A program made the position numbers and the translations under genes. Below, one piece after another: positions 6,762 to 62,402 of a stretch of DNA of 64,000 nt. Each line of letters starts with the position of its first letter. Positions within the stretch are counted from its first letter, which is position 1. The notes under the pieces are model-generated. The model was not told the origin of the DNA, made no database searches, and worked only from the letters and a program-made list of their open reading frames with translations. The DNA comes from Monocercomonoides exilis PA203 (Eukaryota; Protista; Preaxostyla): contig LSRY02000002.1 of the NCBI GenBank assembly GCA_001643675.2, positions 806,001 to 870,000 of the forward strand, given 5' to 3'.

Positions 6762-9700
6762 ATGTTTGACTATGCAGAAAATTTATCTTCTCACCTCCTT
6801 GTAAAAGAGCGCGTTGAAGTCGGCACACCTCCGGGAAGTAGTTGCTCGTTTTCAGTTGTTACATTTAACATTCTTGTTCAACATGGCTGCACCGATCAAC
6901 AATTTACGTACATGTCGCGTCAAACAAAAGATAAACATTCGCGCCATTCTCGTATATATCAAGAACTTGAACTGTTGAATGCAGATATTTATTGTCTTCA
7001 GGAAGTTGATAATGAGCCAGACCTTCTTCAATTTTTTGGGAAAAAATATGAAATATTTTACTTTTCAAGAACAAACGAATATCTTGCTCTTTCTGGAAAG
7101 CATGCACAAAGAAATGATGGAATCGCAGTTCTTTTTAGAAAAACAAAATTTCGCCTTATTTGTTCATCAACCATAAACTTCAATCTTCTTTCAACTCACC
7201 TCGTTCCAACTTCTATGTTTTCTCAAGAAAATTCTCCTCCTCCATCGACTCTAGAAATACGATCAAAGTCTGTTCAATCAATTACAAATCCCAGTTGTTT
7301 TTTTGATCGACTTTCGGATACTTCACAAATAGTGAGTCCAACTCGATCGGAAATACTTAAAGGATTGCCAGAATTCATGAAATGTTTCGTAAAAGATAAT
7401 TTTGGAGTGTACTTTTGTTTGGAAATCTTGAATTCTCCTCAAGACTTTTCTTCGACAGCCGGTTGCAAAGCACGCCCAACAACTAAATTACCACCGGGAT
7501 TTGCGAACTATGTTTTCAATCCTCCTTCTGTATTATTAAATTCAACTGCATCTTCTTCTTCGTCGTCGCCGTTGTCAAGTTCTCCAATTCCGCCAGGATC
7601 ACATCCAAAACTGCTGTTCCTCACAAACACCCATTTGTTCTGGGATCCTCGACTGGACCGGGTGAAGTACGAGCAGTTCCGAATGCTTCTGCGCGGACTG
7701 TCTGTTTTCAAGGCATTGGTCCGCGTGGAGCTGATGAAGTGCTTGAATGACTACTCCCAGCTGTGCAGCGCAAGGCAGATGGCAATGGACAAAGAAATGG
7801 GAGATGGAAAGGGGAACATTTGCGATGAAAGACTTGAAAATGGTACAATTGAAATTGATGGCGATTCTTCTTCTATAGGAACAGAAAATGATGAAAAAAA
7901 CAAGACAAATGTAACAACAGAAGGCGTATCACAACAAAAATTTCCTGGAAATGCACTACAATTTCAAACCCCTTTTTCACAAACCTCATCAGCTCCTCGA
8001 CAAGTTTCATCTCATCCGACACAGGCAGCAACGCAGTCCATTGGCAAAGACTTTTTCTTCTACGATGTGGGGAATGTGATCTGCGGAGACCTGAACTCGA
8101 CAACGACCTCAGAGTTGTACAATTTCTTTGCATATAACAAAGTCAACCGCTATCAGAAGATTCAGATTCCGCTTCTGTGGGACTACATCTTCCGCGACAC
8201 GATCGACGATGTTGCTAAATTGGACAAAGGAAAGAAAGAAAATGCAGGAGAGCAGACTTTGCCAGCAAAGGCGGTTCCGTCTCCTGAAAGCAGTGTGATA
8301 TTCGTCCCCACGCCAACTCCTTCTCCATCGACTTCTGCTTCTGCTTCTCCAATGCGTGTTCACAAAGACTTTTCGATTGACCAGCTGTTCCAACTGAAAA
8401 AGGAATGTCTTCCATTTGCACTTTCCACACTGCATCGCTCAACGCTCCAGAAAATCTTAGCATTCTCAACAAAAGATAAGGATGGAACCCAGCAATCGTC
8501 TCCTTCTCCGCTAGATTTGCCTTCCCCTCTCTCAGCAAATATCACGCCTAATTCTTATTCAGCATCACAACCACCACAACTCTTCGATCAATTCATTGCG
8601 CCTCCGCTTGTGCTACCGCTGCGCTCTGCTTATCGTACTGTGCTGGGAACTGAGCCGCAGTTTACAAACTTCACCCTGAACTTCAAAGCAACCATTGATT
8701 ATATCTTCTTTTCTTCATCTGAGGTCGAGCTTTGGGACGGATACGGAATGGTAAAGAAGAAGGAGAAAGAACAAGCTATGTTGAACGCAGAGAAGAACAA
8801 GGAAGAAGCCAATGATGGAGAATACAAGTACGAATACCCTGAAGACGAGGATTTGGATGAAACTGCACGTGAAAAAGAAGCTGGAGCAGGGAAATCAAGT
8901 GAAGATCCATCTGCTTCCCCAAGCAAAAAACGCAACTTATCTTCTTCAAAGTCGAAAAGCAGCAGCGGCGGAGCTGACGCTTCTGATCCGTATGTCCTTC
9001 TTGAGGATTTGTCATGCAGGCAGTTTGAGTCGCCTGATCTTCTCTTCCGCCCTCTCCCGCTGTTCTGCTCGTCAGTGCTTGCGCCTCCGTCTGTTGAAGC
9101 TGCTTCAAGACAAGTTGGATTGCCGAGCGAGTTCTGTGGATCAGACCATATTTCGCTTAGAGCTGTGTTCTGGGTCGGGGAAGAAGGGGAGAGCGTGAAG
9201 CACCGCAAGCAGAGGTTGGAGGAGGAGTGGTTGAAGGAGCACTTGCCAGAAGAGAAAGACGAAAGCGGCAAGCATCGGCAGCAGCAAGCGATGGCCCAAG
9301 CACAAGCACAGTCACAGATGATGAATCAGATGGCGGTGGGCGGAGGAACCGAGCAGATGAGAATGAGACCGTCTGCAAAGCCTTATCATTCAGTCGTTCA
9401 GCAGCAGCAACAACAGCAACAGCAGATGGAGCTAGCGCGGCAGCAGAAGGAGGATTACGAAAAACAGAAGAAGAAAGAATTTCATAAAGAATTTACTCCA
9501 AAATACAGCACGCAAATGATACAGACACAGCCTCATTCAAACTTGTCTGGCACAAATACATTCATTCCTTCTCAACATCCTCCAGTGCAGACATTTCAGC
9601 AACAGTTTCACACCTCTGCACCTTCGCCATTACTCACAACCTCACCAGCTACTCTGCCACTGATGCCTCAAATCCCTCAATCTTCCTCCCCCTCACCGTC

Positions 9701-10367
9701 GCAAGCGCAAGCACAAGCACCAGCTCCAGTGCCATCTTCGTTCAACACCCAACAGCTGCCTCAGCCTCAACAATATCGCCAGTCTCTCCCACACCCCCCG
9801 CCATACACTTTCCAGCCGCATCAGTCCCATCAGCTTCATCCGCCTCTTCAATCTCATCCGCCTCTCCAGCCTCAGCTGCATCCTTCATATCACCAGCCGC
9901 TTAGTCAAGTGCAGCCTGCGCAGAGACTCCCGTTTCCATATCACCAGAGTCAGCACGCGTCAACTGATGCTCCAATGGTCAATTCATTTCAGCGCAGCCA
10001 AATGGCAAAGCCTCAGCAATTTCCTTCTGCAGTTCCTTCTCCGATGGCTTCTGTTTCATCTCCGGCTTCGCCTCCAGTATCTCATCGGCAGTTTGGAGCA
10101 ACTGACTCGTCAGACTCGGTTTCTTCGTTCTCTGCTGTTCATCTCCCTTCTCCTCCGCTTTCACTTCCAGTTCATCTTGCATCTAATATTCCTTCTTCCA
10201 CCTCTTTAACTTCCGCAGTCACTTCTTCGCCAATTGATTCATCAGCATCAGTTCAATCTTCTTGTCCTATTTCAGCTCAAGATCAGATTCATCAGCAATC
10301 ATTGTATGTGAAAGAGAATGGGTTAACAAAAGTGAACGACATCGTTCCGGATGTTGGACATTCTTGA
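6762..10367 (+). CDS. EEP-superfamily CCR4/Angel/PDE12-like nuclease without LRR, with a Q/P/S-rich C-terminal tail
   Basis: Motifs FSVVTFNILV, ADIYCLQEVD, DGIAVLFRK, NTHLFWDP, VICGDLNS, FTNFTLNFKATIDYIFF and SDHISLRAVF. Confidence 0.85.
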   Translation: MFDYAENLSSHLLVKERVEVGTPPGSSCSFSVVTFNILVQHGCTDQQFTYMSRQTKDKHSRHSRIYQELELLNADIYCLQEVDNEPDLLQFFGKKYEIFYFSRTNEYLALSGKHAQRNDGIAVLFRKTKFRLICSSTINFNLLSTHLVPTSMFSQENSPPPSTLEIRSKSVQSITNPSCFFDRLSDTSQIVSPTRSEILKGLPEFMKCFVKDNFGVYFCLEILNSPQDFSSTAGCKARPTTKLPPGFANYVFNPPSVLLNSTASSSSSSPLSSSPIPPGSHPKLLFLTNTHLFWDPRLDRVKYEQFRMLLRGLSVFKALVRVELMKCLNDYSQLCSARQMAMDKEMGDGKGNICDERLENGTIEIDGDSSSIGTENDEKNKTNVTTEGVSQQKFPGNALQFQTPFSQTSSAPRQVSSHPTQAATQSIGKDFFFYDVGNVICGDLNSTTTSELYNFFAYNKVNRYQKIQIPLLWDYIFRDTIDDVAKLDKGKKENAGEQTLPAKAVPSPESSVIFVPTPTPSPSTSASASPMRVHKDFSIDQLFQLKKECLPFALSTLHRSTLQKILAFSTKDKDGTQQSSPSPLDLPSPLSANITPNSYSASQPPQLFDQFIAPPLVLPLRSAYRTVLGTEPQFTNFTLNFKATIDYIFFSSSEVELWDGYGMVKKKEKEQAMLNAEKNKEEANDGEYKYEYPEDEDLDETAREKEAGAGKSSEDPSASPSKKRNLSSSKSKSSSGGADASDPYVLLEDLSCRQFESPDLLFRPLPLFCSSVLAPPSVEAASRQVGLPSEFCGSDHISLRAVFWVGEEGESVKHRKQRLEEEWLKEHLPEEKDESGKHRQQQAMAQAQAQSQMMNQMAVGGGTEQMRMRPSAKPYHSVVQQQQQQQQQMELARQQKEDYEKQKKKEFHKEFTPKYSTQMIQTQPHSNLSGTNTFIPSQHPPVQTFQQQFHTSAPSPLLTTSPATLPLMPQIPQSSSPSPSQAQAQAPAPVPSSFNTQQLPQPQQYRQSLPHPPPYTFQPHQSHQLHPPLQSHPPLQPQLHPSYHQPLSQVQPAQRLPFPYHQSQHASTDAPMVNSFQRSQMAKPQQFPSAVPSPMASVSSPASPPVSHRQFGATDSSDSVSSFSAVHLPSPPLSLPVHLASNIPSSTSLTSAVTSSPIDSSASVQSSCPISAQDQIHQQSLYVKENGLTKVNDIVPDVGHS

Positions 10368-22096: not shown

Positions 22097-22957
22097 TTTT
22101 TCTTTTTAAGCTTTATTTGTTTTTTATCAAAAAAGATTGAACAATTGCGAGTTTTGAATCACAGATTAAAATGAATATGAATAAACAATTTTGAAAAGTT
22201 AAGCTATTCTTCAAGATATTCTTCCGGGTTTTTTTTTATTTGAAGCAGTACAGTTTTTTCCTCATTGAAAAAAATATTAAACAGCTGCAAATAATCTATC
22301 TTTATTCCTCAATAATCCAAAAATGTTAAAGTGAGCTGTTTTTTATTATTTTTTTTCAAAAGGGAACTCAATGAAGAGATATGTTTTGTTTTTGCTTGCA
22401 TTGTTTTGTTTTTTTTTTTTTCAATAATAACACCAAATAGTTTTAATATTCAATAAATCTGGAAGAAAAAATCACCAAAAACTATCCACAATTGTGAATC
22501 TGGGTTGATTGAATAATTTCAACAGCATCAAACTTTTTTCAACATACAGATATCGCACAAAATTCCTGACATCGCACAAAATACTTGACAAGATTGATTT
22601 CACAATGACTGTAGGAGGAATATTTCTGACAATTTTCCTCAAAATATACCTCATCAATGCAAACTCATTTAATATTCAAAAAATTCAAAAAAGCTTCATT
22701 TGTGTTCAGAAAAAATAAAATTCGAAATCTCGAAGAAATAGGATTTTGAGTTTCCCCGAGATTTTAATAATAATTATTTTCTGAGCACAAATGAAACCTT
22801 TTTGAAACTTTTGAATATCAAATGAGTTTGTATTGATGAGATATATTTTGAGTAAAATAGTCAGAAATATTCCTCCTACAGTTATTGTGAATAGGCCTTT
22901 GCGACAAGGAAATTTTTAGCGATGCGTGTCGGTCGAAAGACTTGGACTGTGTCGAGT

Positions 22958-22958
<1 letters not shown>

Positions 22959-23009
<51 letters not shown>
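22959..23009. repeat. Poly(T) tract of 51 nt just inside the short end of element 1
   Basis: Seen directly; element 2 has a poly(A) counterpart at 37898-37934. Confidence 0.95.
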
Positions 23010-23012
<3 letters not shown>

Positions 23013-26000: not shown

Positions 26001-27997
26001 TGTGTTAATTGACCTCTTTTCATAATGGGATCGTAAGAGGCTGTGATCAAACATTGTATCTTTCCATTCAGTGCACCGAAGTGATGGCTTATGAATGGAA
26101 GCTCATCAACTCGACGACTTCTATGAGATGGACTTTCAGACGAGGACAAGGAAGGCTTTTGGAGAGGAAAGAAGAAGATGAAGGAGAAGAACGGTGAGTG
26201 AAAAGAAACAAATGATGGATGAGGTTCTGAATAAAAGAAGCGAAGTTTGTTTCAAGCTGAATTCTTGAGGGAAAATGTTTATTTATTAGAATTTGAAGAA
26301 AATGAAGTATTTGTGGAAGAAGATAAGGAAGAAAATTAAGATAAGGATGAAGATGAAGAAGCAGACAAACGATGTTTGACAGAAGTTAATACAGTTCCAG
26401 AAGCTATCCTTTTTGCAGTCTTCTGCAGAATCGTCTGCTGAGCTGGTATTTGATTTTGAAACAAAAAGCTTTATGACTCTTTTAAAGTCATCCATTTGCG
26501 TGAGTGGAACATAAGGCGGCAGTCAATAAACTTTGCTTTGTAGAATAGCAGCAACTCATTGTCTTTTGTGTGCTCTTTAGCCATTTCACTGTCGCAAATC
26601 TCAGGCTACGAAGAGAGAAGAGAAGGATTCATAACATCATTATACAGCCTCATGTGTATTTGCAGTGAAAAGTGCGAATAGACAATCATCTATGTGGTTT
26701 TGGGCTGCATGACTGGATCAAAGATGTGCACACACAAACGAACCGCAAAAATCAATGTGACTGTTCATCTGCTGCTCATCGCCTTTGCTCCCCAGTTGGT
26801 TCGGTAGCACCCCTCTCATTTCCTGAATCAGCTGTAATATCTCGTTGTTTATCTTTAAGGAAACCAGAACCTGCCATGTTGTCAGATCAAACTCCATCAT
26901 CTCCTTCTCCCTGGTATATATCTCCTATCAAATAGCACAGCCTTGCATGGCTTCCACAAATTGAGAGAAGTTAGATGCTTGGAATGAAACCCGTATCTCT
27001 GTTCCTTTTGTAAAGCATGCAGCAGAGCCATAATTCCTCTTACAAACAGATAGATAAACCTCATTCCCGGACTTCTCTTACTTCAATCCTGGGCGAAAAA
27101 ATAAATAAGTTAAGAAGAAAAAGAAAATTGAGCACTTTGAGCTGAATAAGACTGAGTAAGACTTCTTTTTGCAGGTGGTATCAAAATGAAATCAAGTTTC
27201 ATCTCCATGTTTAAATTCCTTGCTGTGTATTTGCAAGTGCTTGTACTAAATAGTGTGCGAATTCTCTTATTGAAGAAATCGATGGCCCGCAGCTGACTCC
27301 TATCCATCTCAGAGTCTTTAGAAGCTTCAGCAATGGATCTTCTTGTTCAGCACACAAATCATTTCTATGGCACAGATACTTTATGAACGCACAATTCATC
27401 ATTTTCTTCTTCAATGAATATGTAAATTTCCTTATCTTCTTCAAAATCTTAGTAATTTCTTTTTCTTTTTCTTTCTTCCGTAAAAAAAATATTGAATTGT
27501 GATCATCTTCATATTTTCGCTTCTTATAGCAATTTCCAATTGAATGAGTCTCTTTTCCTTTTGAATTCGTAATTAAATTATTCAAATTATCACAATAAAT
27601 ATTAAAATATCTTCACAAGCATTGACAACTTGTTAAATATCTATATCCTGCCTTACGTATTCAAACTTAAAAGCAAAGATATGAGTTAAACCTTCGACAT
27701 ATTTTTTCCAGCGGTTTCCAGGAATATTGTGTTTTTAAACAAAATAAAAAAAAATATAATTATGGATTCAATTCAATTTCTTTTAACAGATTGCAATTAT
27801 TTAAATATTAATATCCATAAACAGAAAAAGTGTGAAACAAAATGTGGCATCAAACGAATGAAAATATCGAAAAATATATCAAAAACACAAATTCCATCTC
27901 TGTCATATTTTTATGAATGTTCCTTATAATTATCTTTTAATAGAATAAATAAAAAAACTATGTTTGAAAGACAAAACGATTTCAAAATAGAACATTC

Positions 27998-28090
27998 GTT
28001 CGACAGATTGATCTTTTCGACCGACTGATCTTTCTACCGACTGATCTTTGTCGTTCGACTGATCTCGACAAAGATCTGTCGATAACCCAT
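27998..28090. repeat. Subterminal tandem repeats of about 16 bp (CGACCGACTGATCTTT-like) in element 1, mirrored at 29061-29151 in element 2
   Basis: CGACAGATTGATCTTTT CGACCGACTGATCTTT CTACCGACTGATCTTT GTCGTTCGACTGATCT; the reverse-complement copy lies in element 2. Confidence 0.85.
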
Positions 28091-29179
28091 TGAATATTTC
28101 TAATATCAAAAAACTAAATATTTGTTTGCTCGAATCTTGTGAAATTTTATTTTATAAATAATAAAAAATATAACTCAATGAAAACAAAAAAGCAATATTT
28201 ATATATAAATGTGTTTTCATCGAACAAAAAATTAAATTCAAGCGAACTGTTTTGTCGGTCGACTTGTCGAGCTGATGAAAAAATGTCGGTCTGTCGCAAA
28301 GGTCTAATTGTGAAATCGATATTGTCCTGTATTTTGTGCGACATCTGTATTTGAAATTCAATTCAGTTGTTTTTTTATGACCTCTGTAACATGACTAGAG
28401 AAATTTGAAACAATGAAAATATTTCTGAAAAGATTTTGTCGAATTGTCAAATTTTTTCATTTTGAGACCTTTCAACAATTTTTATTTTGCAATAATGTTG
28501 TTAACATCTGTGATTATTATTGAAATCATATTTTTTCATTCAAAAATTTCCGTTCAAGTGTTTCCTTTGAACATAAATTCATGATCACTGAAGAGTGAAA
28601 AGCCTCAATAAAGACATATGAATATTGATTTCATCTGATTCACTTAATCTAAATTCAATTGTGATCAATAAAGCATTTGAATTCTAAAGCTCTTTTCAAT
28701 AACAAGCAAATTTTGATAAATCTGCAACACGAAAAAAGATATGATTTCAAAAATAATCACACACATTGATATTTCGACAGATGAAAGAAATGGAAAGAGA
28801 AAAATTGGAAAATTTTTAAAACTAAGTTTTGCTTATTTTTGTTTAGGCCTTTGCGACAGACCGACATTTTTTCATTAGCTCGACAAGTCGACCGACAAGA
28901 CATTAAGCATAATTTTTCTTTTTTGATTAACGAAAAAACATTCAAATAAAAAAATGCACTTTTGTTTCCATTGAATAATTTTTTTTATAAATTAAAAAAT
29001 ATAATTTCACTGGATTCTAACAAATAAATATTTTATTTATTGATTTTTAGAAATTTCAATGGGTTATCGACAGATCTTTGTCGAGATCAGTCGAACGACA
29101 AAGATCAGTCGGTCGAAAGATCAGTCTGTCGAAAAGATCAATCTGTCGAACAGATTCACTTTTTTGAAAACATTTCTTC

Positions 29180-32100
29180 TAGACCTGTGTGACATGACAC
29201 GAAAAATTCGAAAAAACTCAAAAATGACAGACACGATCTTTTGATTTTGTCATTTTTTTGTCACTCAAATAAATAAAGTGGAATTATTAACTATTAAAAA
29301 TTTTAACTCATTAAAACGTTAAAAAACATGCAAATGTTTTTGTATCTTATTTTATTCAACTTTCAAAGAAATCAAAACACTTTCTTATTAATAAAAAAAA
29401 AGTGACAAATTGATCAAATAAATATATTGTGGTTTTGTCACTTGTCAGATCTGTCACTGACATGTCAGATCTGTCATTTTGTCATTTTTTAAAACACTCC
29501 TTAATACTTGTTGAAATCGAAAAGCTAATATATTTCGTTTATTTGTGAGGAAAATTCTTATTTGTCACAAAACGATCTGACAAAATGAAATTTATTTTGT
29601 TTGATTGTTTCGATGGATTTTTGTTGTTTTTAAATGGTTTTTTTGGTAAACATTCTTGTTTTTAGGTTTTTGTTTAAGTTTTTATTTTGTTTTTTTTTTT
29701 TTAAAATTTGTTTAAATATTATTTGTTTCAAGAATTCTTTATGTTGATTTTCATTTTTGTTTTTCGAGCCGTTGAAGACATGGAGCAATAAATATTTAGC
29801 AGATTAAAATTATATCGCTTTTATTTTTACTGAAAGTTTTATAAACCATTTGCAATTGTATGATTTTAACTTGTTTTTAAAGTTAACAAAAATCTTGAAA
29901 AATCAACGTTCAAAGAGTAATTGTTCATTAACAACGTAAAACAAACACAAATATATATCTTTTTAAAGTAATGAATAAATTTTCTATTTTCGATTTAAGC
30001 AAGAGTTTAAAAAAAATATCTTTCAAAAAATTAAAATAAAAAATTGAAATCAGAATTCCATGAATGAATATTTTCAAGCTTCTTTAAAAAAATCATAAAG
30101 CATTCCGTTTGAAAAATCCCCATCTTTATCTTCTTTGTTTTATTTCTTCCATACTGCAGCATGAACAGCGAATTCCAAATGTCCATACTCAGTTTTTCAT
30201 AAAGCGATGAACAGGCCATTGCATCCACCAAATTCGACATTGATGAAGTGGTTGGGCACAGATCCTCCCCATGAATAAATGTTGTATCAGAATCTGTGGT
30301 TGAAGTTGATGAAACGGATGGCGAGGTTGTTCTGTTTCCTGTCTCTTCAACATCTTCTTCCTTTTCCAGCATCCATTGAGGGATCTTGTCTGAATCTCTT
30401 CCCAAGATATATTCAGTTGAGCCACTCTCAGAAAGAAGATGCTCTGATGATTCTGAGTGTCCCAAACGTTTCTCATACACTCTCTTCTTTATTCTCTCCT
30501 CGTTCTTCTTCTCTGTCTCTCCTCCATTGCTCCACCGGTGACATCTCCATCGTCACCATCTCAATCAGCTTCGGATCCTTCGACACCACGTCAGCCACTA
30601 TCTTCTTCAAGCCCTTGTTCTCATTCTTCGCTTTCAGCCTCCGCACAACCAGAACAGCAGGAACATCTGGCCGAAGACAACAATGAGAAACTCCAGCCAG
30701 TGTGGGAGTACAAGCGTAGCTGCTTCGACTGGCTATACAGTACTAGCAGGCTCTGATTCGTTTTTGAAAATGAGGGGTTGTGCTATACACAGAACACCAT
30801 AGGCACTGCCAAATAGAATAGTTATAGTAATTACGGAAGTGGAGAGCAAATGTGTGAATGTGGCAATCGGGACATGCACTCAGGCCTCGCTCTCCGACAC
30901 ATACCCTTCGTCTACGGATACGTTGCTATAGACAATTTCCACACTATCTGCGATTGTGACGAGGCGGAAAGCGAGTGCGCGTTGCAGGAGAAGCGATCAA
31001 AACAGTTAAGCTCCACGAGGCTATAGGTCTCCTGAGCGGCAAGTGATGAAAATAAGGGGACGAAGAATGATGAGGTGAAGACGGAGATGATTCCAGCCAG
31101 GGGACGCTCCTCGTTCCGGATCTGCAAAGAAGTGTTGCCAAAAGCACATTCACCTCGTTTTAAGATCGCCAGAGTCAGCGATTGAAAATCTGAGTTGGTG
31201 ATTTTTGAGCAGGAAGACGATTGGCTGCTTTACTAACCGTCACTTCAGGCAGAGGGGATGTTACTCACAAAACGTTGCATTGTTGATGCGGACAGCACCT
31301 CAAGAGATAGATAACGTTCTATTAGATGCACTTGAAAAATTGAGATTAATGATGACTGCTGCTGTGTTGCATAAATCAACAAGGAGATTCTGTCGCAGCT
31401 GTTTCCGTTTATTATTGCGATGCATTCAATGTGAGCTCTTTCAATGAATCATGCTACAAGCGAGAGTTCGGGTGTATTTCTCACATTTTAATGCTCCCAT
31501 TCCGTGCAGGTTTATCTGCATTGCAGTCAGAAGATGAGGCACAAGGCAAGAATGTCCAGTTGCGCAGGGCAATGTGTGAAGAAAGGGAAGACGCAGGAAG
31601 TGCAGACGTTGTGAAGGAGGTGTCGGAGCTGGTGTTGGAGCCTACGTTTGTTCAGTTGTGAAAAAATGATCAGGAAAAGGCAAGATCTTCCACTGATGTG
31701 GAGGGGAGGAAGAGGGTTCCTCCTTGCGAAACAAATGATGCTCAGCAGACAGACTGTGAGGCGAGGTGTTCCTGAACTGACAGAACTCGAAGGCGCTGGA
31801 GCACAGCTGGAGTAAAAGGTATTTTATGCCTGCGAGGGCAACATAGTCGGCATCGGAGAGAAGGAAAGGCGAGAGAGCGAACTTGAGGTGCAAGGCTGAG
31901 CAATTGTTTACTGGAACGTTGTAACACAACATAGCGAGCAGAGAGGATTTAAGTTGCATTTGGCAAATGAGAAGGAGATGCGCCAATTGGTGTTGTTCAT
32001 ATCAACACTGTCAGAGGACCAAAAGGGAAACACGAAGTAGAGGGTGAAATGTTCCATCCGGAAGTTTGCAGAGGTTGCAAGGAAGGCGAGGAAGAATAAG

Positions 32101-34490
32101 ATAACAGAATCGAAACGAATTAGTGAAGGACTGAGACTTTTACTATCAGTTGCTCACGCTTGTTGTTTTGCACTGGGAGCAGATAGCTTTGTGTAGCGAT
32201 ACAAACCGTTGAGAGTATTAGGATCGATTAAGTTTATAATATTCTTCATTCTAAAATCGGAAACGAGCTTCAAACTCTCCAAACTGCTTGCTGTTCTCGT
32301 GATTGTCCCTGACCGAATACACAAATACCTTCTCGCTATGGAACTTCACAATTCTCTTCAGCAGATCTTCTTCATCCAGATACATGTCCGAGGTGCACCC
32401 CCATATTGCGAGTTCTTTCACAAATGTATCTCTGAAGTTCAGCAAAAACTGATTATCTTCAATCTGTACTTCTATCGAGTGGCACTTCACAAACAAATCT
32501 CTTCCATGATATGCGGCATTGCCCTTGAACGTGATGATCGACAGCACAAATGCTGCTGGCTCCGCAGCTGCAGATGTGCATTCCAAAAACAAGCATCTAC
32601 CCCTTCCAGTTGATGAGCAGAAGCAGTCGGTAATTGAAGAATACAAGCAGTCAAAACTTCCTCCTTCATTCAATCTGAACAAAATGGTCCCTCCATTTTC
32701 TCATCCTGAACCACCACGTTTTTTGATTGTTGCATTGCGGATGACCATTTTAATTGGGTCAAGGTCTGCGCTTCGGATCATTGCAATGCCACCAGCTGCG
32801 CTCTCGGTCACTTGCTCAAGCGTGTTCCATTCAACAGCAGAACTTTCATCGGCTTCGGGGTTCGTGTTCTTGTCTTCAGCAAAAGACCTATCAATATGCA
32901 ATCCGCTTCTGCCTTCCAGCTTTATATTTTTCATTGTCAAGCTTCTGAATGTCAAAGATGCTGCAGATGCGATTGATATGATGTCAGAGGAAAATGAAAG
33001 CGAACGTATTGTCACAAACTCCAACATAACCGTTCCTCCATCTGCCTTGATAAGCCCAAACCTGATTATGTCTTCTCCATCTTCCTTTTTTGCGAATGAA
33101 CAATTATTTAAAGTTAACGATCCTTCTCAAGAGCAAATATGCGTCAACACATTTTCATAACCAGTGAATGAAGATGGCAGAATGAAGCTTATAAATTCGA
33201 AATATGAAATACCTGGAATTTTCATTGCAGCATCCTCCACTCCCCTTAGTGAAGAGCAACACTCCAGAGAGCACATATCTGTATTATTTGAGCTTATTGA
33301 AATTCCACAAAGATTGACGTAAACTCGAAGAACTGCACTATTCATAATGCTTATGCTTTTATTATTTCCTCCTGGAATTCTGGGTTGAAAATAATCGATG
33401 GACAGGCATAGATAATCTGAGGATCCGCAAGCACCCATATCTCTTCCTTCACTGCCAACAAATGCCTCCGAGCCGAGCGAGTGCCAGAAATAAACAAGTG
33501 GAATGGCATTTGCTGTATCATTTCCATCAAAGCCTCTTATGTATTCAAACGAAATATCAGAAAGATGTACAGTCACAAATAAAAGAGAGACGTTTGTAAT
33601 GCTCTTTGTCAATAAAAAAGATTTATAAAACATGACATTTTTATATCTTGCTGCATTTGGCTTGCCTGCATCAAATACTATGAAAAATAATTAACAATGG
33701 ATCATTACTAACAAACATCAATGCTATCCCTTTTTCAAAGCCAATCCTCTCTTCTCCGGTTGGTGGCGTTCATCCTGTGAATATGCATGAAGTAATATAC
33801 AGCTTGGCTTTTCGATTTATCTGTGTATTTATTGCCCCTTTTCTGCTTATGATAGATAGCTCACAATACTCTTGAAAAACGCCTTCATTTATGTTCATTA
33901 GTGAGTAATCTTTTTCAATATTATGTATTGAACATTCACGTAGTATCTGTCTTTTTTGAATTCCATCTGTTGCTTAAATATTGCATTGCTGATTTGCAAA
34001 AAGTTATTTGTCCCTGTTAATAAACAAATGTCCATTTTATTGTATATCTCTTGAAAATAAGTTTTCCATATGTACTGGAAAAAAGTTCATTTTTGACATC
34101 TCATAATCAATCGAACGAGCTGACATACAAATTTGTATTCGCTAAAATGATACAGGAACAAACTTTATCCTCTTCAATTTTAGTATTAAAAATAGTTTAT
34201 TGACTTTCAAGACAATTTGTTCTTTCATAGAAGATCTATAATTGCTTGATCACAAGTTGTTATTACGAATAAAGACCGCAACTGAAAATATTCAAATTCC
34301 AAATATTTATTTATGGTTTCGTATTCAATATCACTGTTTCAATAATAAATGTTTTCTAATGTTTCTGTTCAAAACAATCGGTATTAATTTATCAAAAAAT
34401 TCATAAATAATATTAGTTAAAATATTATGGGTTTTCATGATCTAATTTGACTGACACAATTTTTAAAATTTGTCATGTCACACAGGCTTA
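29180..34490. mobile_element. Element 3: non-autonomous hAT-like TIR element, 5311 bp, nested in element 2, carrying a receptor-gene fragment
   Basis: 20-bp TIR TAGACCTGTGTGACATGACA versus TGTCATGTCACACAGGCTTA (18/20 match). Exact 8-bp TSD ATTTCTTC at 29172-29179 and 34491-34498. Many subterminal TGACA/TGTCA motifs at 29190-29585. Confidence 0.88.
30110..34300 (-). pseudogene. Decayed paralogue of the 11637-19820 giant receptor gene, truncated at both ends
   Basis: Collinear matches: IRGFDGNDTANAIPLVYFW...ACGSSDYLCLSIDY; LNEGGSFDC...CFCSSTGRG; GRDLFVKC...FVKELAIWGCT; KDPKLIEMVTMEMSP; LLSESGSTEYILG; DLCPTTSSMSNLVDAMACSS. Many stops and frameshifts; it ends before the kinase C-lobe. The upstream limit is approximate. 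Confidence 0.88.

Positions 34491-37897: not shown

Positions 37898-37934
<37 letters not shown>
37898..37934. repeat. Poly(A) tract of 37 nt just inside the short end of element 2
   Basis: Seen directly. Confidence 0.95.
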
Positions 37935-37936
<2 letters not shown>

Positions 37937-38248
37937 AAACACTTCTCGACATTGATTTTGTCATTCGACCGACATGCCTCGCTTTATTTTTACTTGTCGC
38001 AAAGGCCTATTTTTGTTATTGAAATTTGCATTTTTTAACATATTTCACTTCAAAAATTTGGTGCCAACAAAAAAATGGGGCAAATAAAAAATCTAACATT
38101 ATTCAAAATTAGTGAAGAAAAAAATTAAAAATTTAATTTGTGTAAGAGAGAAAAATAAGACTTAGTTCCATTAAATATATACTTTCAGTAAGAAATATAA
38201 TATTTAACCATTTATTAATTAATGCAAGCTGTATAGAAATCAAGAAAT

Positions 38249-41194: not shown

Positions 41195-44100
41195 TTACGT
41201 AGGTGATAAAAAGTGCTCTTCCACATCCAGCGTCCTTTGACCGCTGAAAAATGGTTTTTTGAATCTCTTCCATTTGCCCGTTCCGATGACTAAGTGCCGA
41301 ATAACCGTCCACTGGCGCGGCTTCCCGTCTTTGTCCTCCAAACCTCCGCTTCCACTGCTGCTCTTGTCATAGAACGAGCTCGACCGCTTGGGCACATTTG
41401 CAGCAGCCATCTCCAGACTGGCAGCAGAACATGTCAAATCTCCCATGCTGGCTGAAGCAAAACTCCCTGTTGAATGCTGCGAGGCGCCAGGCGACGTCTG
41501 CCCCTTTTCTGTGGCGAGCTGCGCATACGAGCTGACGTGCGGGTAGTGGCTCGAGTGAGGTGAGGTTGTTGCTGCCTGCGCATTGCCGCCTGGGGGTGTC
41601 TTCATCACCAAAGACACAAACGAAGGCTGCCGATTCGCTCTGATGCCCACCGGCCCCACAAGCGGAATGGCTGGAAGCGACGCCACAGGCGACAGGGCAG
41701 GCACATTCCCATCAGAAGACGAGCCGTCCCACGCGTCCAGTCCAGCAGGGACCATCTCTGGTGCGACTGGAGGCGGCGGGGGTGCTTCAATGAGCGCGCT
41801 CTGCATCGCCTCTGACGTGGCTGCCTGCTCTCCAAAGGAGAGCGTGCAGCCGGGCGGTGGAGGGCCGTTGAGCGTGTAGACACCAGCAGGCACGCCTTCT
41901 TCGAACACCAGCGGAATTTCTCCGTTGAACGGGTCGGGCATTTTCACAAGGTGGATGACAAAGCGGACGGGCAGGATGAGAATGGCAAAGAGCAAAGAGA
42001 AGCCCCAGAGCTGTCCGGATATCCAGATGATGGAGAACGCATCTCTGACACCCGGGACAAGCATGATGAGCACCTGCAGACATGCAACGATGATCCAAAT
42101 GGCTACAAACATCAGGTTTGCGAAGATGCGGTCGAAGAAGTTGATCTCATTGTAGCACTTTCTAGACGCTATCCAGTTGAACACCTGCATCCAGATGAAT
42201 GTGTTGAACACGAACGAGAAATGCTCCTCTGAAAATATTGCGACATTTCTGTCCAACAGGAATGGACGACAGATGGACTTAGGAAACATCACGTGAGAGC
42301 ATTCAATCAAGTCATTAGACTGCAACAAGGGACACCTCTCAACCGCCCAGTTCGTGTCAGCGGAGAAATTAGCATCAGAGAATTTCTCGCCCCACAGAAA
42401 CATCGTGACGATCAGCACAATCGCCTCATATGCTGCCCCTCCGATGATGTTGCGCCACATCGACTTGCAGATGATGGAGTCGCTTCGTCCGTACGGTTTC
42501 CTCTTCAGGAGCTGTTTTGTGGGTGTCTCTGTTGCCAGTGCCAGGGCAGCGAGCGTGTCCATAATGAGATTCACCCACAGCATCTGCACGGCTCTCAAAG
42601 GAGTGATGGCGAAGATCGCACCAAACACAGCCACCACAATGGCAGCGATGTTGACTGTCAGCTGGAACTGGATGAACTTCCGGATGCAATCATACACATT
42701 CCGACCCCACATCACCGCTTTCACAATAGACGCAAAGTTATCATCAGTGATAATGATAGACGATGCGTCCTTAGCCACTTCTGTTCCAGTTATGCCCATC
42801 GCAAAGCCAACATCTGACTTCGACAGCGCGGGTGCATCGTTTGTCCCATCTCCAGTCACAGCCACCACATGTCCCAGATCTTGCAGCCCACTCACCAGTG
42901 TGTGCTTGTCAATGGGAGACGAGCGTGCCAGCACCTGCAGCTTCGGAAGAATCTTCTTCCTGTCCTCTTCGCTCAGCGCGCGGAACACGGGGCCTTCCAT
43001 CGCAATCCCGTTCTGCGGATCGTAGATGCCGCATTCCTGGGCAATGTGCATCGCAGTGATGATGTTGTCACCAGTCACCATCCGCACCACTATGTGTGCA
43101 TCGTGGCAGTCCTGGATCGCTTCTTGCACTTCTGGTCGGAGCGGGTCTTTGATGCCTGTAATGCCCAATAGAATCATCTCTCCCTCGGGTGGTGTGCTGC
43201 CAAAGGGACCGGTTGACTCGTCTTCTTCGTCTTCATCATTTTCGGCTTCATTGTTTTTATTGGTTTTATTGTCATTGTTATTGTTGTTATCATTGCCTTC
43301 TTCTTCACTGCAGCCTTCCTCTATCTCAGAAGTCGCTGTGGTTATTCCATCGTATCCTGAAGGAGGGTAAACTCCTGGGTTTTGCGGGTCATTCACAGAA
43401 GGAGTGCGAAGAGAGTCAGCAAGTGTCATTGTATGTGCACCTTTTGAGGGAGTGAGAGAAAGAGAAGAAGTTTGTACAGAGGAAGAAGAAGAAGGAGGCA
43501 GAAGCAATGGATCAGCCAAGGAGTTAAGAGGAGAGGTAGATGTGGGAGGCAGCTGAGAAAGCATCATTGCCTGATTGAAGGATGGATTTTGGGAATAAAT
43601 TTCTGCATTATTATTGTTAAAGCCATTGGCCTGATTACCAGAAAGAGTCGGAGAAAGCGGGTCAGGGCTCAAAGAAAAGTGCTGATCTGCCATGTTTTGT
43701 GGAGCAGCATTCGGAATATTTGAAGTATTTGAAGAAGCAGCCACATGAGTCGAGACATGTGAAGAAACGTCTGTGAGAGCTTCGTTCGTCTCGTCCACCA
43801 CATCCAGCACCTCCTGGAACTCCTGCCTCCACATCTCTGCATTGCCCCTCAGCCTGCTGTTCAGTTTTTTCATCTCTTTTTCTTTTCTCATCGCTTCTAC
43901 CTCAGCCTTCGGCACATCCTTGTACGCTAAAGCAATAGTTCTCAATCCCTGTGATGCCATCCACAGTATCTTCTCATCAATCAGCTTCTTCTGTTCATCG
44001 CCAATCGCAACCACTTTCCCATCCAAGTGCATCTTGTGGCACAGCGCCGACACGATTTCACTGGCCCCTTTTGTATACACTCTGTACTGCTCTCCTTTGT

Positions 44101-46311
44101 CTGCCACGACAGTCATCCGCTTCCGCTCTGACGTGAAGGGAAACATCTGCACCACTTCTTCCCTCTGTCGAATAGCAGAGTAGCTCACCCCTTGGTCCTG
44201 TGCGAATAACAGCAGGGCGCATTCAGTCACGTTGCCCAGGTAGTCCACTCCGCCTGTGTGTGACAGCTTCAGATTGGCCGACGAGTTCAGAGCGATGCAC
44301 TCAGAAAGCGTGTCAAAGAAAGGGGGAGGTAGGCCCAGGGTGTTGTTTGGGCTGTTTCTTGGAGAGGAGGAAGAGGAGGAGGAGGAAGAAGAAGAAGAAT
44401 TGCTTTGGTCGTTAGTGGCATATTCCAGTGAGACAGAGGCAGAAGCAGCCTGACTGACGGAGCTGATGAAGCGGTCTTGGCCATTGCTTTCTCCACCTGC
44501 TGAAGAGGCTCCTGTGTCAATCAGAGCATTCTTCTGGTACATCTCCGCCGGCTCAGCAACAGAATTAGCAGAATTAGCAGCAGCAGAAGAAGCAGCACTC
44601 GAAGTGTTGTTCTTCTTCTCCAAATCAGACAGAGTCGCGCCGTTGAACCAGCCGGTTGTCACTTTCATCTTGTTCTGTGTGAGTGTACCTGTCTTGTCAG
44701 AGCAGATGGTTGTGGCACCGCCCATCGTCTCGCAGGCTGATAACACACGGACGAGGTTGTTGTCGGCAAGCATACGGCCCATTGAGTATGCAAGAGCAAT
44801 TGTCACAGCTAAGGGTAAGCCCTGTCAGTGGTTGGATTGGGATCAAGTGTTAATATTAATTTATTAATATATAATCAATAAAGAAATTTAATTTTTTTTT
44901 TAAAAAAATATTGATGAAAATGAAGACGATTCTTATCGAACTGAAAAATAATCACACCTCTGGCACAGCCATGACGATGATTGAGACGGCGATGGTGAAG
45001 TAGTCGAGAAGGAGGATCCAGTAGGAGCCTGCCTTGAAGTGGTCGGGCTCTTGAATGGCAGGGACAAGCCAGAAGATAAACAGCAGCACAAGCACAAATG
45101 CAGCCGCAACCATTCCAACATACCCGATGTCTGAAAAAAAAAAAAAAAAAAAAAAAAGGATCATGTGTTTTGCGGTTGTACGTGGGAAAATTATTTTCGA
45201 GCAGAAGAGAGGAAGGGCAAGAGAAGAAGTTGAATTTTTAGATTTTGAATAATATGAGAAAGATAAAATTCAAAACAATCATTATTGAAAAACAGTTGAA
45301 AAGAAAACGTATTCAAATTTGTTTCAACAAACATGAAAAAAAAAATAGTTGCAAACGTTTGGCTAATTCATCTAAGTTCTCCTGAAGTGGAGTTTGATCT
45401 CTTTCTTGAGCAGCTGTAATGACCGCCTGTTTCAAAATACCAAACTGCGTTTCCATTCCTACAGCAACCACAAGCATCCACCCAAAGCCAGTCTGCACTT
45501 TGCATCCACATAACAAAAATGGATGTTTTTCAGGAGATTTTCTTATAAGATCTGATTCACCTGTCATTGCTGCTTCATCACAAGATATATTGTTGGATTC
45601 AAGGCAAATCCCATCAACAGGAAGTACATCTCCAGTTTGCACTTGCACAATATCCCCAACTAAAATATCAAAAATAGATATTTGAACGAGCTCCCCTCCT
45701 CTTTTTACAATTATACTCCTGTCCTGTTGCCTTTCATTGAGTTTCTGAAACTGACGTTCCTGAGACCATGTGTTCCAAGCAGATACCACTTTTTTAAAGA
45801 AAAGCAATAATTAGATCAATATCGAGAAATGAAATTGAAACACATACATGTAACGACAAATACAGTTAAAAATATAGCCGCTCCATCAAGCCATGAAAGA
45901 TCAGCACCTTTTTCAACAGCAATAGCTATAATTAATGAAATAGCCGCAAGGACCATCAAAATTATCAATGTAGTATCATTAAAAGCTTCGAGCCAAAGTC
46001 GGAAAAAAGATTTAGGTTGAGGTTTTGCAAGTTCGTTTCGTCCATAGCTGAAAAACAAAATAAATACAACAAAAAATACATAAAATAAAATACATAAATA
46101 TTTGTAATAATGGTGATAAAAGACGACTCGCAAACATGCTCTGTCTGATTTCTGCTTGTAAATCTAATTGATTCAGCCCATTCGGGCTGGAGTTCAGCAT
46201 TTGCATAACACCTCCTATTCCCCCTAACCTCTGCAAATACGAAAGCTCTCTGGTCTCCATCATTTCGCGAATTATTTGTTTATCGAGCCATTGGCCTTGC
46301 TGCGGTTGCAT
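41195..46311 (-). CDS. P-type IIB (PMCA-like) Ca2+-transporting ATPase, with introns in the 5' part
   Basis: DEAAMTGESD, VPE|GLPLAVT, ICSDKTGTLT, KGASE, MVTGDN, VTGDGTNDAPAL and QMLWVNLIMDTLAALALATE. Confidence 0.95.
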
Positions 46312-46393: not shown

Positions 46394-48051
46394 ATGTCGT
46401 CCACAAAAGACATTGAAGATATCGATGAAAACGAATCAGAAGATGACGGAATTACAGAAGCTGAAGCAAAGGCGTTTAAAACAGAACTAAAGCGTGATGG
46501 CTATTTATTTAATTTGGGGAGCGTCAAACGCATTGCAGATACGTTGGATAACGTGACAAAAGAAACTGTTTGTGTCACTTCATTTATGATTTAAGAAAAT
46601 ATTTTTTATGTTATTTTCAGTTGAAAAAATCAATTCTCGACCTTGATTTAAAAACTTGCTTTGAAAAAAGTAATTTTGGAGATAGCTATTTTGGAAAAAA
46701 TAATGCTGCCATTGCGGGTCCATATATTTTACAAGTTACTGATATTAGAAATATTTGCCAACCCACATATTCTTCAAATGATTTTCCATCACTTCTTATG
46801 ATCACTTTATCAGATGGATACGCACAAGGAAAAGGAATTATATCCAAGGAAAGAATTCCAGGACTTGACATCCACACACGAATGGGATGCAAACTTTCTT
46901 TGAGAAACGCTCAAACAAGTCACAATATCATTCTTCTCACTCCTCAGAGCGTTAAAGTTCTTGGGGGTTATGTTCCTCAACTCGAGAAAAGTGGCGATGT
47001 TAAAAGAGCAAACATAGCACCTGCTCGTCCTCCTTTTATTCCATTTCAAGCAGGAGGTTCATCAATTATTCCTGGTGGGACAGGAGCTTTCGGTGCAGGA
47101 ACTTCAACTGGAAGAAAGGGAACAGTTTCTTATGCATCTTCTTCAAGAATACCCTCAACCTCTGCTTCTGCTTCTGCTTTTGCTTCTTCTTCTTCTTTTG
47201 CACCATCTCCTTCGCCTTCATCATCGTCTTCATATGTCCCACCTCAAAGGCCATCGACATCTTATGAGAGAAGCAGGCAGTGGAACGAGAAGCCGGGCGA
47301 GAGAGACAACAAGGCCGATCAGGGATGGAAAGTGGCCGGAGTGAAGAAGTTTGGCAGAGAGAACGAGGAAAGAGGAGACAAGAAGACATGGCAGCCAGCA
47401 CAGCGCCAACCTCAGTCTCAGTCTCAGTTTCAGCCTCAGCGCTTTAATAGCTCATTCAAACCAATCCCAGATTCATTTTCTTCTGCTTCTGCACCTGCTT
47501 CTGCACTTGCTCCTGCACCTGTGCCAGCTGCTTCACACTCATACACTTCAAACTACAAACAGCCATTTTCTTCTTCTTCTTCTTCTTCTTCATATGTTCC
47601 AAGACAATCATCAGCACCACAGCCATTTGCAGCGCGGCCAGCCACTGCGTATGCCTCTTCATCGGCTTCTTATTCGCAGCAGTTTCAACCTCAATTTCAA
47701 CAGCCATCACAACAACAACAACAGAGTTCATCGTATGTTCCTCCTGAGAAGATGACGACAGCTGACTTCTTTGCCGGCGTGAATTTGCCTTCTTCCCATT
47801 CTTCTGAGGACGAAGGGCGCAGCGGGAGAGGGTTTGGCGGGAGAGGAGGAAGAGGCGGAGGAAGAGGCGGAGGAAGGGGATTTCGCGGGGGAGGAAGAGG
47901 AAGAGGAAGAGGAGGCGGAAGAGGAGGAGGAGGAGGGTTCAGGGGATATGAACAGAGAGATGAAAGAGGAGGGAGCATGTATTCCGGTGGAGCGGCATCT
48001 GCTGCTTCAGTTCCTCCTTCTTTTGCACCAACAGATTTCCCATCTTTATGA
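46394..48051 (+). CDS. TDRD3/RMI1-like N-terminal OB-fold protein with an RGG tail; intron 46568-46620
   Basis: ILDLDLK...GPYILQVTDIRNICQP...LLMITLSDG...IPGLDIHTRMGCKLSL...ILLTPQSVKVLGGYVPQL, followed by RPPFIPF (TDRD3-like), an RGG box and terminal DFPSL. Confidence 0.8.
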
Positions 48052-52220: not shown

Positions 52221-54066
52221 ATGATTCCTGGAGTTAAAAGAGGAGATACTATACATTATCGAGATCTCATTACAGAAGTTGCGAAGGCAACGTATGAAGG
52301 AAATTTGGTTGAAAGAATTGATCTTATTCCAATTGAACTATGCTGTGAAGGAAGAGACACAAATTTACAGCCAACACTTGAAGAAGGTGTAAACAAACAT
52401 AAATAAATTATAGAATTTATAATAAATCGATTTTTTCTCTGGAATTAAGACAGAAGCATCTCTCGATTGCGCTTAAAAGCAATCCTCGGATTCGATTTAA
52501 AAGAAGAAAAAGGAAGCGAATTGGATCTGAAAGCACTCGCACAGCAAGCTCTTAAACGTAAAACAAAAGAATATATACCGTTGGTTGCTGTTGCGAAAGA
52601 AGTCTGCCGTTTTTTCTCTTTTCCAGATTGCTTAATCACGTCACTGAAAATATTGCTTTTTTTATCTTTTTTAGGCATGCCATAAATGCAATCAATCAAA
52701 ATACTACGTAACAAATAGTTGTGAAGGTTGTATTGCACGTCCATGCATGCTTAATTGCCCAACAAAGGCAATATCAAGAATAAATGGAAAAGCTGTAATC
52801 AACCCGGAAAAGTGCATTGCATGTGGTAAATGCGCATCATTATGTCCATATAACGCAATTCACAAAAAGCACATTCCATGCGTTGAAATATGCCCAGTTG
52901 GTGCTGTATCAAAAGATGAGCACGGGTACAGTAAGATTGATTTTGAAAAATGCATTCACTGTGGGAAATGTATGGTCAACTGTCCATTCAACGCAATCTT
53001 AATGCCGTCGCAAATTGTGGATGTTGTTAATAGCATCAAAAACGGGCGAAGAGTCGTTGCTATGCTGGCGCCTGCGATTCTCGGCCAGTTTGGAGGAACA
53101 GTTCCTCAACTGCACCAAGCTTTGCTGAACTGCGGGTTTCACGAAATGGTAGAGGTGGCTGCAGGCGCAGATGTGACTTCGCTGATGGAGGCAGAAGAGT
53201 TTATTGCTCACGTTGGTTCTGGCAAGCAGCCATTGATGACAACATCCTGCTGCCCTGCATTCTTCCAGTGCGTTCATAAGCACGCGCCGAAGCTGGCGCA
53301 ATTTGTGTCGCACACGGGCTCTCCGATGCATTATGCAGCAGAGCTTGTGAAGAAGAGAGATCCAGAAGCAGTCACTGTGTTTGTCGGGCCTTGTGTGGCA
53401 AAGCGCGCGGAAGGGCTGCGCAGGGCGAATGTGGATTTTGTTCTGACAGCCGAGGAGTTGCTGTGCATCTTCATGGCAAAGAACATCGAAGTCGCCAAAG
53501 TTGCTGTGAGCGAAGACCCCAGGAAGACGCGCGAAGCTTCAAGAGAAGGCACATACTACGCGGTGACACAGGGCGTAGCTGCGGCTGTGAAGGATGCTGT
53601 TCCTGCTGCTCTTTCGAGACTGGCAAAGCACGGAGGAGAGCATATTGATCCGCTGGTTGGGCCTGTGTCCCAGCTGGAGTCTGCAAAGCTCGATGAATGC
53701 TCAGTGAAGGAGGATCCGAACTTAGCAGATGAGTCGTCAAAGGCTCCAGTGACTCCAATGCCTGGAAAGGGAGAATCGCCTGAAATGGCATCTTCGTCAT
53801 CCACTCCATCAGATGCCAAGCCTGCTGTTGATTATAGACCTATTTATATTGCGCCACTTGACAGGAAAGCTGTGAACTTATTGAAGCAATGGGGAGAAAA
53901 ACCAGAAACGTGCCCAGGAAATCTTGTTGAGTGCATGGCGTGCGACGGAGGTTGTGTTGGTGGACCTGGTGCTGTTGCTCTTGCAACCCTTGGAAAAGGT
54001 CGTTTGACTGCTCTTTACAAGCAAAGAATCGAATTCAAAGACATTGAAGATGTGATGGCTCTTTAA
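52221..54066 (+). CDS. hydA: Monomeric [FeFe]-hydrogenase, group B-like, with N-terminal ferredoxin clusters; exons 52221-52386, 52450-52601, 52675-54066
   Basis: H-cluster motifs TTSCCPAF, GPCVAKRAE and ECMACDGGCVGG. Fe-S motifs ACHKC...CEGCIARPCMLNCP, CIACGKCASLCP and CIHCGKCMVNCP. Two GT-AG introns restore the frame. Confidence 0.93.
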
Positions 54067-60567: not shown

Positions 60568-62142
60568 CTAACCAACCGAGCCTTCCAAAACAACACCCAG
60601 CAGCTTTCTAGCTTCTGCAGCGAACTCAAGCGGCAGCAGCGACAGCACATCTTTTGCAAAGCCATTCACAATCATATTTACTGCATCGTCTGCATCGATG
60701 CCGCGCTGTGCACAGAAGAACAGCTGCTCCTCGCTGATCTTGCTCGTGCTGGCCTCGTGCTCATAGACTGCCTGTGGCTGCGAGCTCTCTGCCAGAGGGA
60801 ATGTGTGTGCCCCGCATTCGCTCCCAATCAGAAGCGAGTCGCATTTCGAGTGGCACTGCGCGCCCTTCGCACCGGCTGCAAACTTCACAATGCCTCTGTA
60901 CACGTTGTCGCTCTGTCCGGCGGATATCCCCTTCGACACAATGGTAGATGTCGTGTTCTTGCCAATGTGGATCATCTTCGTCCCCGTGTCTGCCTGCTGC
61001 CTGTTGTTCGTCACTGCCACGCTGTGGAACTCGCCCGAGCTGCCGTCCCCGCGGAGCACACACGACGGGTACTTCCACGTGATGGCTGATCCGGTCTCCA
61101 CTTGTGTCCACGTTATTCTGCTGTTTCGCCCTGCACACAGCCCTCTCTTTGTCACAAAGTTGTAGATGCCTCCTTTGCCTTCTTTGTCTCCAGGGTACCA
61201 GTTCTGCACAGTGGAGTACTTGATTGTCGCTTCATCCAGCGCCACAAGCTCCACAACAGCCGCATGCAGCTGATGTTCTGAACGTTTTGGTGCGGTGCAA
61301 CCTTCCAAATAAGACACAGTTGCTCCAACATCAGCAATCACTAATGTACGCTCGAATTGACCTGTGCCAGCACTATTGATACGAAAGTACGTTGACAAAT
61401 CAATGGGGCAGTGGGTGTATGGTGGAATGTAGCAGAATGAGCCATCAGAGAACACAGCAGAGTTCAGTGCAGAAAAGAAATTGTCCTCAACTGGAACGAC
61501 CGAGGCAAGATACTTCTTGATCAAGTCTGGATGCTCTGCAATAGCTTCAGATATTGAGCAGAAAATGATTCCAAGCTTAGCTAGCTCTTCTTTTTGTGTA
61601 GTAAAAACAGAAAGAGAATCCCACACAACGTCTACACTGACTCTCTCCAAAGTCTTTTGCTCATCAATTGGAATTCCAAGTTTATCCATTGTTTGACGAA
61701 TGTTAATGTCAACTTCATCAATTGTTTTGGGTTTATTAGATGCAACAGATTTTGGTGCTGAATAATAAACAAGATCTTCATAATTAACTGGAGGATAATC
61801 AAAATAAGCCCAATGAGGTTCTTTCATTTCTTTCCAAGCACGAAAAGCTCTCAGACGAAAATCGAGCATCCAATCTGGTTCGTGCTTTTTTGTAGAAATT
61901 TGTTTTATGATTGCTTCGTTTAGTCCACTTTCAACCATATCAACTTCATCAATCTTTGTTTCGAATCCAGGCTCATATGTGCTATTATCCAAACCAAACA
62001 CTTTTACAACTTCTTCTTTTCCTGTTGCTTGTTGTGGCTGGAGAAAAGGATTTGCTGCAGATAGTCCTTCGTCTAAATCGTCTGCAAGCGATAGAGGATC
62101 GAGTAGAATTCGAGAACTTGAAGGTTTAGATGAAGCAGTCAT
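60568..62142 (-). CDS. sufB: Fe-S cluster scaffold SufB, apparently intronless
   Basis: [38 protein letters not shown]...[75 protein letters not shown] and LPLEFAAEA. The start at 62142 is the first ATG; an upstream exon is not excluded. Confidence 0.97.
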
Positions 62143-62402
62143 ATCAAATTTCAATGAATCAATTGTCTTTAAAATACAGAAAATAAATTGCATATATTAA
62201 ATTATATTGTAAAGATAAAATATAAATGCTGAATAACATTTGCAAACCACTGAAAAATCGAAATAACAATCCGATTTCTCCGCAAAAATATAATAAAGGG
62301 AAAGTTGTTTCATGTGAAAAGTATTACACCAGAATAATATTCAAATAGTGACTTTGTCAATTGAGTTGGTGCAACATGTGTTTTTGATATGAAAACCATT
62401 AA

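Follow-up and report, generated by a model that had tools for sequence, protein, structure and literature searches.

A 64-kb stretch of contig LSRY02000002.1 from the oxymonad protist Monocercomonoides exilis PA203 (positions 806,001 to 870,000, hereafter the window) carries a 5311-bp element, E, at window positions 29180-34490. E is a non-autonomous cut-and-paste transposon of the Pack type, most likely a hAT, in which a fragment of a giant receptor-kinase gene replaces the interior and which is nested in a second, related element, B. Pack-type capture of genes by hAT and other elements with terminal inverted repeats (TIRs) is established in plants (10.1101/2021.06.18.448592) and animals (PMC8277862), and a literature search for gene-carrying TIR elements in oxymonads found no report. 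Coordinates are collected in Table 1.

Ends and target-site duplication of E

An earlier note on this DNA had described short TIRs and an exact 8-bp target-site duplication (TSD) around 5.3 kb, which was borne out with correct coordinates: the inverted ends agree at 18 of 20 positions, both mismatches forming a GA/AG swap at positions 3-4, and ATTTCTTC stands on both flanks. The 16-nt TIR core occurs exactly twice in the 64 kb, in inverted orientation, where 0.01 occurrences would be expected by chance. A generic finder requiring inverted ends matching at 12 of 14 positions and an exact 8-bp duplication (null of about 0.25 pairs per 64 kb) returned three pairs only, corresponding to E, to B and to a further element, A, and the 20-nt end criterion combined with the duplication gave no hit across 20 shuffles. 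That such ends and duplication coincidentally enclose a resident pseudogene is extremely improbable: the AT-rich flanks alone speak for coincidence, and against it, besides the rarity of the core and the empty shuffles, stand the relatedness of the ends of E to those of A and B and an unoccupied site found both in A and in a DNA contig.

The 16-nt core was also scanned in metagenome contigs, where none of the 120+ matches had extended similarity to E. As relatives of E these matches were rejected, since they consist of chance matches and of an unrelated tandem satellite of about 24 bp containing GTGTGACATGAC (contigs L085, L105 and L112), whose match to the TIR core is likewise fortuitous.

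A truncated and decayed receptor-kinase fragment as cargo

The reference for the cargo is the intact gene at the left of the window, a 2736-codon open reading frame (ORF) with 529 relatives, nearly all of them MONOS_ proteins of M. exilis, so that the giant receptor-kinase family of this organism has at least 529 members. In its product, a kinase C-lobe (residues 2603-2704) follows a signal-like N-terminus and the only strong membrane helix (residues 2314-2332), a layout that makes it a type-I receptor-like member of the family termed protein tyrosine kinases (PTK) in the genome paper. Within the window, family homology is confined to this gene and the cargo block. The cargo was located through translated searches, for which the local gene and 240 family proteins served as queries, and was itself queried as separate stop-free pieces. 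Over about 4.0 kb (minus strand, 34069 to 30055) the protein-level homology is collinear, and all 120 first-listed family hits match this block. Relative to full-length members, the cargo spans approximately residues 1050-2340 of about 2570 (for example, 1051-2336 of 2574 in P0084), lacking the N-terminal ~1050 residues (40%) and the C-terminal ~240 residues, which hold the kinase C-lobe. At least nine in-frame stops and five frame changes (frames 1, 0, 2, 0, 1, 0) interrupt the homologous segments, and the cargo does not hold the complete family layout of signal peptide, ectodomain, membrane helix and kinase in one ORF. The description of the cargo in the earlier note as a collinear, doubly truncated and decayed paralogue therefore stands, except that its length is about 4.0 rather than 4.2 kb.

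That note had further treated the cargo as a paralogue of the local intact gene; the collinear family homology agrees with this, but the cargo has closer relatives than the local gene. The latter is only 29% identical to the cargo over the ectodomain part, compared with 50-56% (33678-32152) for the best of the 240 annotated family proteins, which reach 76-79% in the conserved juxtamembrane block, and it was rejected as the cargo parent for this reason. A nucleotide search of E against the rest of the window gave a single hit (74%, 30131-30580 against the local gene), so the paralogy is seen mainly at the protein level. In a representative search, a 149-residue cargo piece gave 131 hits within the family at up to 61%, and none of these improved on the 50-56% over the long cargo block; searches with the 143- and 119-residue pieces found no protein of similar length, the length window of the search excluding full-length relatives.

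Nucleotide identity to the cargo is 81-87% for DNA contigs covering 30884-32552 and about 83% for those covering 32601-32855 and 33592-33917. Another DNA contig (depth 103.7) starts in the left arm of E at about 29506, carries deletions (29602 to 29779 and 29854 to 30123) and reaches the cargo with a far side of 26 letters. Taken together, this arm-cargo contig and the 81-87% contigs give a hint of a second copy that has diverged from E but is arranged alike.

Transcription of the cargo

The cargo is transcribed at a low level. RNA contigs without any difference from E tile 30552-33172 in two RNA libraries, and one further contig with three differences extends the cover to 33528. This cover is restricted to the cargo, with none over the arms of E or over the multi-copy arm of B, and the lack of RNA over arms that are multi-copy in DNA argues against DNA carry-over. 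Two other forms were noted over the same region, namely a variant without 106 bp (30975-31082), which occurs in DNA and RNA contigs at an RNA depth above that of the E cargo, and a 138-bp skip (30268-30407) seen only in high-depth RNA contigs; both probably stem from expressed paralogues and not from E.

Nesting of E in element B and the unoccupied site

E is nested in the related element B, which the earlier note had not remarked. It sits in the left arm of B, 329 bp inside, and without it B measures 3847 bp. The 15-nt end consensus TARRCCTKTGYGACA has six hits in the window (0.02 expected), and these six form three correctly oriented pairs, one per element (A, B and E), and an exact 8-bp duplication accompanies each pair. 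A and B lie head-to-head across a 535-bp spacer and have two arms in common, of 343 bp (27965-28306 in A, 84% identical to the B left arm) and 114 bp (82-83%), and their interiors are mutually unrelated. Searches of the long stop-free stretches of A and B against Pfam and NCBIfam gave neither a transposase nor an identifiable cargo, and both may themselves be non-autonomous elements bearing filler or cargo. The longest stop-free stretch of B is low-complexity, being the antisense of a purine-rich strand, and tracts of about 50 nt of poly-T (22957-23010) and poly-A (37898-37940) lie within the short arms of A and B.

The arm of A aligns to that of B across the E target site and for another 7 bp or so, with one target-like octamer before the TTTCA that B also has, which makes A a paralogous unoccupied site. 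In addition, a DNA contig of the source strain joins 29171 directly to 34491, skipping 5319 bp (the 5311 bp of E plus one 8-bp copy), with eight letters that fit both sides. Its depth points to a repeat, and in our reading it stems from a further B-like copy or from an allele, either of which would lack E. The B arm is strongly multi-copy in DNA contigs. No more than about 7 bp separate the insertion site of E from the point where the arm common to A and B ends internally (27965-27975), for which the prior chance is about 0.5%; this proximity could be a coincidence, a target preference or the mark of a fragile site. An A/B-type end with a perfect 15-mer was also present on another chromosome (locus L004, 6801-6854, minus strand). 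About 1 kb from it, and outside the element as oriented, lies a gene with a DDE_1 (pogo-like) transposase domain (7917-9000, plus strand).

Arms and subterminal motifs

Only about 875 + 420 bp of E are not cargo. The left 441 bp contain 15 copies of TGTCA (34 per kb against a window mean of 2.4 per kb) and the right 101 bp contain three, with no TGTCG in either. In A and B the related motif TGTCG (window mean 1.5 per kb) occurs 8-9 times in each arm of about 340 bp and three times in each arm of about 118 bp, and TGTCA is missing from three of the four arms and present once in the B right arm. The subterminal motif thus mirrors the inner end of the TIR, as GTGACA/TGTCA in E and as GCGACA/TGTCG in A and B. 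This covariation indicates that E on the one hand and A and B on the other are two sister transposon families, Hermes-like in build, and it is the pattern to be expected were each family served by its own transposase acting at subterminal sites.

In DNA contigs, the left subterminal region of E has several-fold the coverage of the unique parts (at 80% likeness or more), while the inner left arm and the right arm are unique. Sibling DNA contigs carry internal deletions in this region (29259 to 29340 and 29259 to 29424, with sides of 75-90 letters) and show shorter other members of the E family. Within the spacer between A and B, the stretch 28379-28456 resembles the opening 78 nt of the E left end (69% identity, three mismatches in the core) and could be what is left of an E-family element that kept one end; adjoining it is a pair of 28-nt inverted repeats (28509-28536 and 28734-28761, 93%).

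Table 1. Positions in the window of element E and its parts, of elements A and B, and of the reference gene.
Feature	Start	End	Strand	Remarks
Intact family gene	11637	19847	minus	2736-codon ORF; reference paralogue, not cargo parent
Sister element A	22892	28306	minus	TSD ATTGTGAA at 22884-22891 and 28307-28314
Host element B	28844	38009	plus	ends TAGGCCTTTGCGACA; TSD TTTTTGTT at 28836-28843 and 38010-38017
Left TSD copy of E, ATTTCTTC	29172	29179		exact 8 bp
Left TIR of E, TAGACCTGTGTGACATGACA (TAGACC...)	29180	29199	plus	16-nt perfect core 29184-29199
Left subterminal region of E	29200	29620	plus	TGTCA-rich; multi-copy in DNA contigs
Inner left arm of E	29621	30054		AT-rich; without family homology
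Cargo of E	30055	34069	minus	pseudogene fragment, giant receptor-kinase family of M. exilis; partial ectodomain through N-part of kinase
Right arm of E	34070	34470		unique in DNA contigs; TGTCA confined to last ~50 bp
Right TIR of E (TAAGCC... inward)	34471	34490	minus	reverse complement TAAGCCTGTGTGACATGACA
Right TSD copy of E, ATTTCTTC	34491	34498		exact 8 bp

Class of E and origin of its cargo

E shows the trait that defines Pack-type elements, TIRs and a duplication around host-derived sequence, and, in agreement with the earlier note, a domain search of its stop-free stretches recovered no transposase. The assignment of that note to the hAT superfamily is plausible. The exact 8-bp duplications around E, A and B, the short imperfect TIRs (20 nt at 18/20 in E and 15 nt in A and B, within the hAT range of about 10-25 nt) and the dissimilar ends with asymmetric short subterminal repeats echoing the inner TIR all agree with it, and E is judged hAT-like mainly because this architecture is that of Hermes; the missing transposase and the fifth base of the ends do not fit. 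The usual hAT end consensus is YARNG. The end pentamers TAGAC, TAAGC, TAGGC and TAGAC follow YARN.

Several points weigh against our interpretation of E as a hAT that travelled with its cargo. Position 5 is C, not G, in six of six ends. The hAT target pattern nTnnnnAn is followed at position 2 (T in three of three sites) and at position 7 in only one of three (A), the count resting on three sites in AT-rich DNA. For the hAT assignment the weightiest point is that no hAT transposase with these ends was present in the window or in the 124 kb of six further family loci of assembly GCA_001643675.2 (L001-L006). Among the 240 family proteins none was identified as a parental copy outside E, no sibling copy of E with the same cargo was recovered, so that movement with the cargo aboard rests on contig joints, one with the short side of 26 letters mentioned above, and the short side of the empty-site contig comprises 23 letters only.

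Another superfamily that makes 8-bp duplications (P, Merlin-like or short-TIR Mutator-like) is a lesser possibility, given that a duplication of this length is not unique to hAT and that the fifth end base is C; the ends of E are nevertheless short, begin with TA(G/A) and border arms that, like those of Hermes, are asymmetric and carry short subterminal repeats. As to the cargo, E could descend by internal deletion from an autonomous element in which a receptor-kinase gene lay next to the transposase, the fragment then being inherited instead of captured by a non-autonomous element. A cargo of 4 kb, far larger than the pieces usually captured (median 224-305 bp; PMC8277862), would suit such an inheritance, which is possible but doubtful, as no such autonomous element was seen, none had TARRCCTGTGTGACA ends, and E holds no transposase remnant.

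Alternatively, an ordinary E may have inserted first and had its interior replaced later on the spot by template switching or gap repair. Transposition-independent filling of this kind was proposed by Tan et al. for most single-copy Pack-TIRs and is reported as the dominant route in animals (PMC8277862), and the unique right arm and inner left arm of E, the failure of protein searches with cargo pieces to recover a same-cargo sibling and the presence of a same-strand family gene 10 kb from E would agree with it. That gene matches poorly, however, with 29% identity over the ectodomain part, and hence leaves no nearby donor, and the depth-103.7 contig, which links 29506-29854 to the cargo at 30123, hints together with the 81-87% contigs at a second copy, so that replacement in place appears unlikely. 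We infer instead that E already carried its cargo at the time of this insertion and that E was mobilised in trans. An unseen transposase would have recognised the TGTCA subterminal repeats together with the 20-nt ends, excised E and inserted it through an 8-bp staggered cut. The copy studied here entered the left arm of B, an older, related non-autonomous element. The receptor-kinase fragment is a passenger, with both gene ends gone and so many stops that no receptor could be made from it.

Relation to the receptor-kinase family

Repeats make up nearly half of the M. exilis genome; most are unclassified, these amounting to 35% of the genome and overlapping the tyrosine-kinase-like PTK family, whereas DNA transposons account for 4.5%, and the genome paper contains no description of gene-carrying elements (PMC8767320). 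The earlier note had proposed TIR elements as a candidate mechanism of family expansion. Seven other family blocks were sampled: besides the intact gene of the window, these were six blocks from the six further loci on other chromosomes, of which three are large and three are small fragments. No credible TIR/TSD pair surrounded any of the seven, in a small sample and with imperfect finder sensitivity, the second finder missing ends with terminal mismatches. With the cargo of E a dead fragment and none of the other blocks lying between such pairs, the proposal was not supported, and transposons are not shown to be builders of the receptor-kinase family.

Transposon-borne fragments might still form a transcribed mobile pool in gene conversion with the 500-plus receptor-kinase genes, and might feed antisense or small RNAs directed at these genes, which we regard as very unlikely; if true, TIR elements of several superfamilies would influence how diverse the largest surface-protein family of M. 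exilis is, or how it is expressed. E-like elements also help to explain part of the overlap between repeats and the tyrosine-kinase-like family. Part of the family signal is dead cargo in DNA transposons, which bears on gene counts and annotation. Moreover, A, B and E offer a natural case of sister families in which end and subterminal motif changed together, and thus a testable instance of divergence in transposase-DNA specificity.

Other genes in the window

Further genes in the window encode a P-type cation ATPase (41195-44806), an RMI1-like protein (46570-48051), an iron-only hydrogenase (52747-54066, plus strand) and a SufB/D-type Fe-S assembly protein (60568-62193, minus strand), the SUF system being a feature for which the amitochondriate M. 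exilis is known. A 1201-residue ORF at 6762-10367 (plus strand) with an endonuclease/exonuclease/phosphatase domain at its N-terminus is probably ORF2 of a non-LTR retrotransposon.

Comparison with known elements

Hermes has dissimilar ends, imperfect TIRs with two swapped base pairs, asymmetric subterminal repeats, BED-domain binding and 8-bp duplications (PMC10368747). E resembles Hermes and Ac-type hAT elements in its 8-bp TSD, its short TIRs with a two-base-pair swap, its dissimilar ends and its asymmetric subterminal repeats, and differs from them in having no transposase present or linked, in its end pentamers (TAGAC/TAAGC) and in the agreement with nTnnnnAn at position 7 in one of three sites (PMC10368747). 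With Pack-TIR and Pack-hAT elements such as Pack-hAT-N8_XT it shares intact ends with a TSD and a fragmentary, transcribed host-gene interior in place of the transposase (PMC8277862). It departs from them in the size of its cargo, about 4 kb against captured medians of 224-305 bp (PMC8277862), in its host, an oxymonad protist instead of a plant or animal, and, unlike the Pack-TIRs compared, in a cargo that derives from the largest gene family of its genome with no parental copy identified. Collectively, E is distinguished by its nesting together with a paralogous empty site, its covarying end and subterminal motifs, its 4-kb cargo and the restriction of transcription to that cargo.

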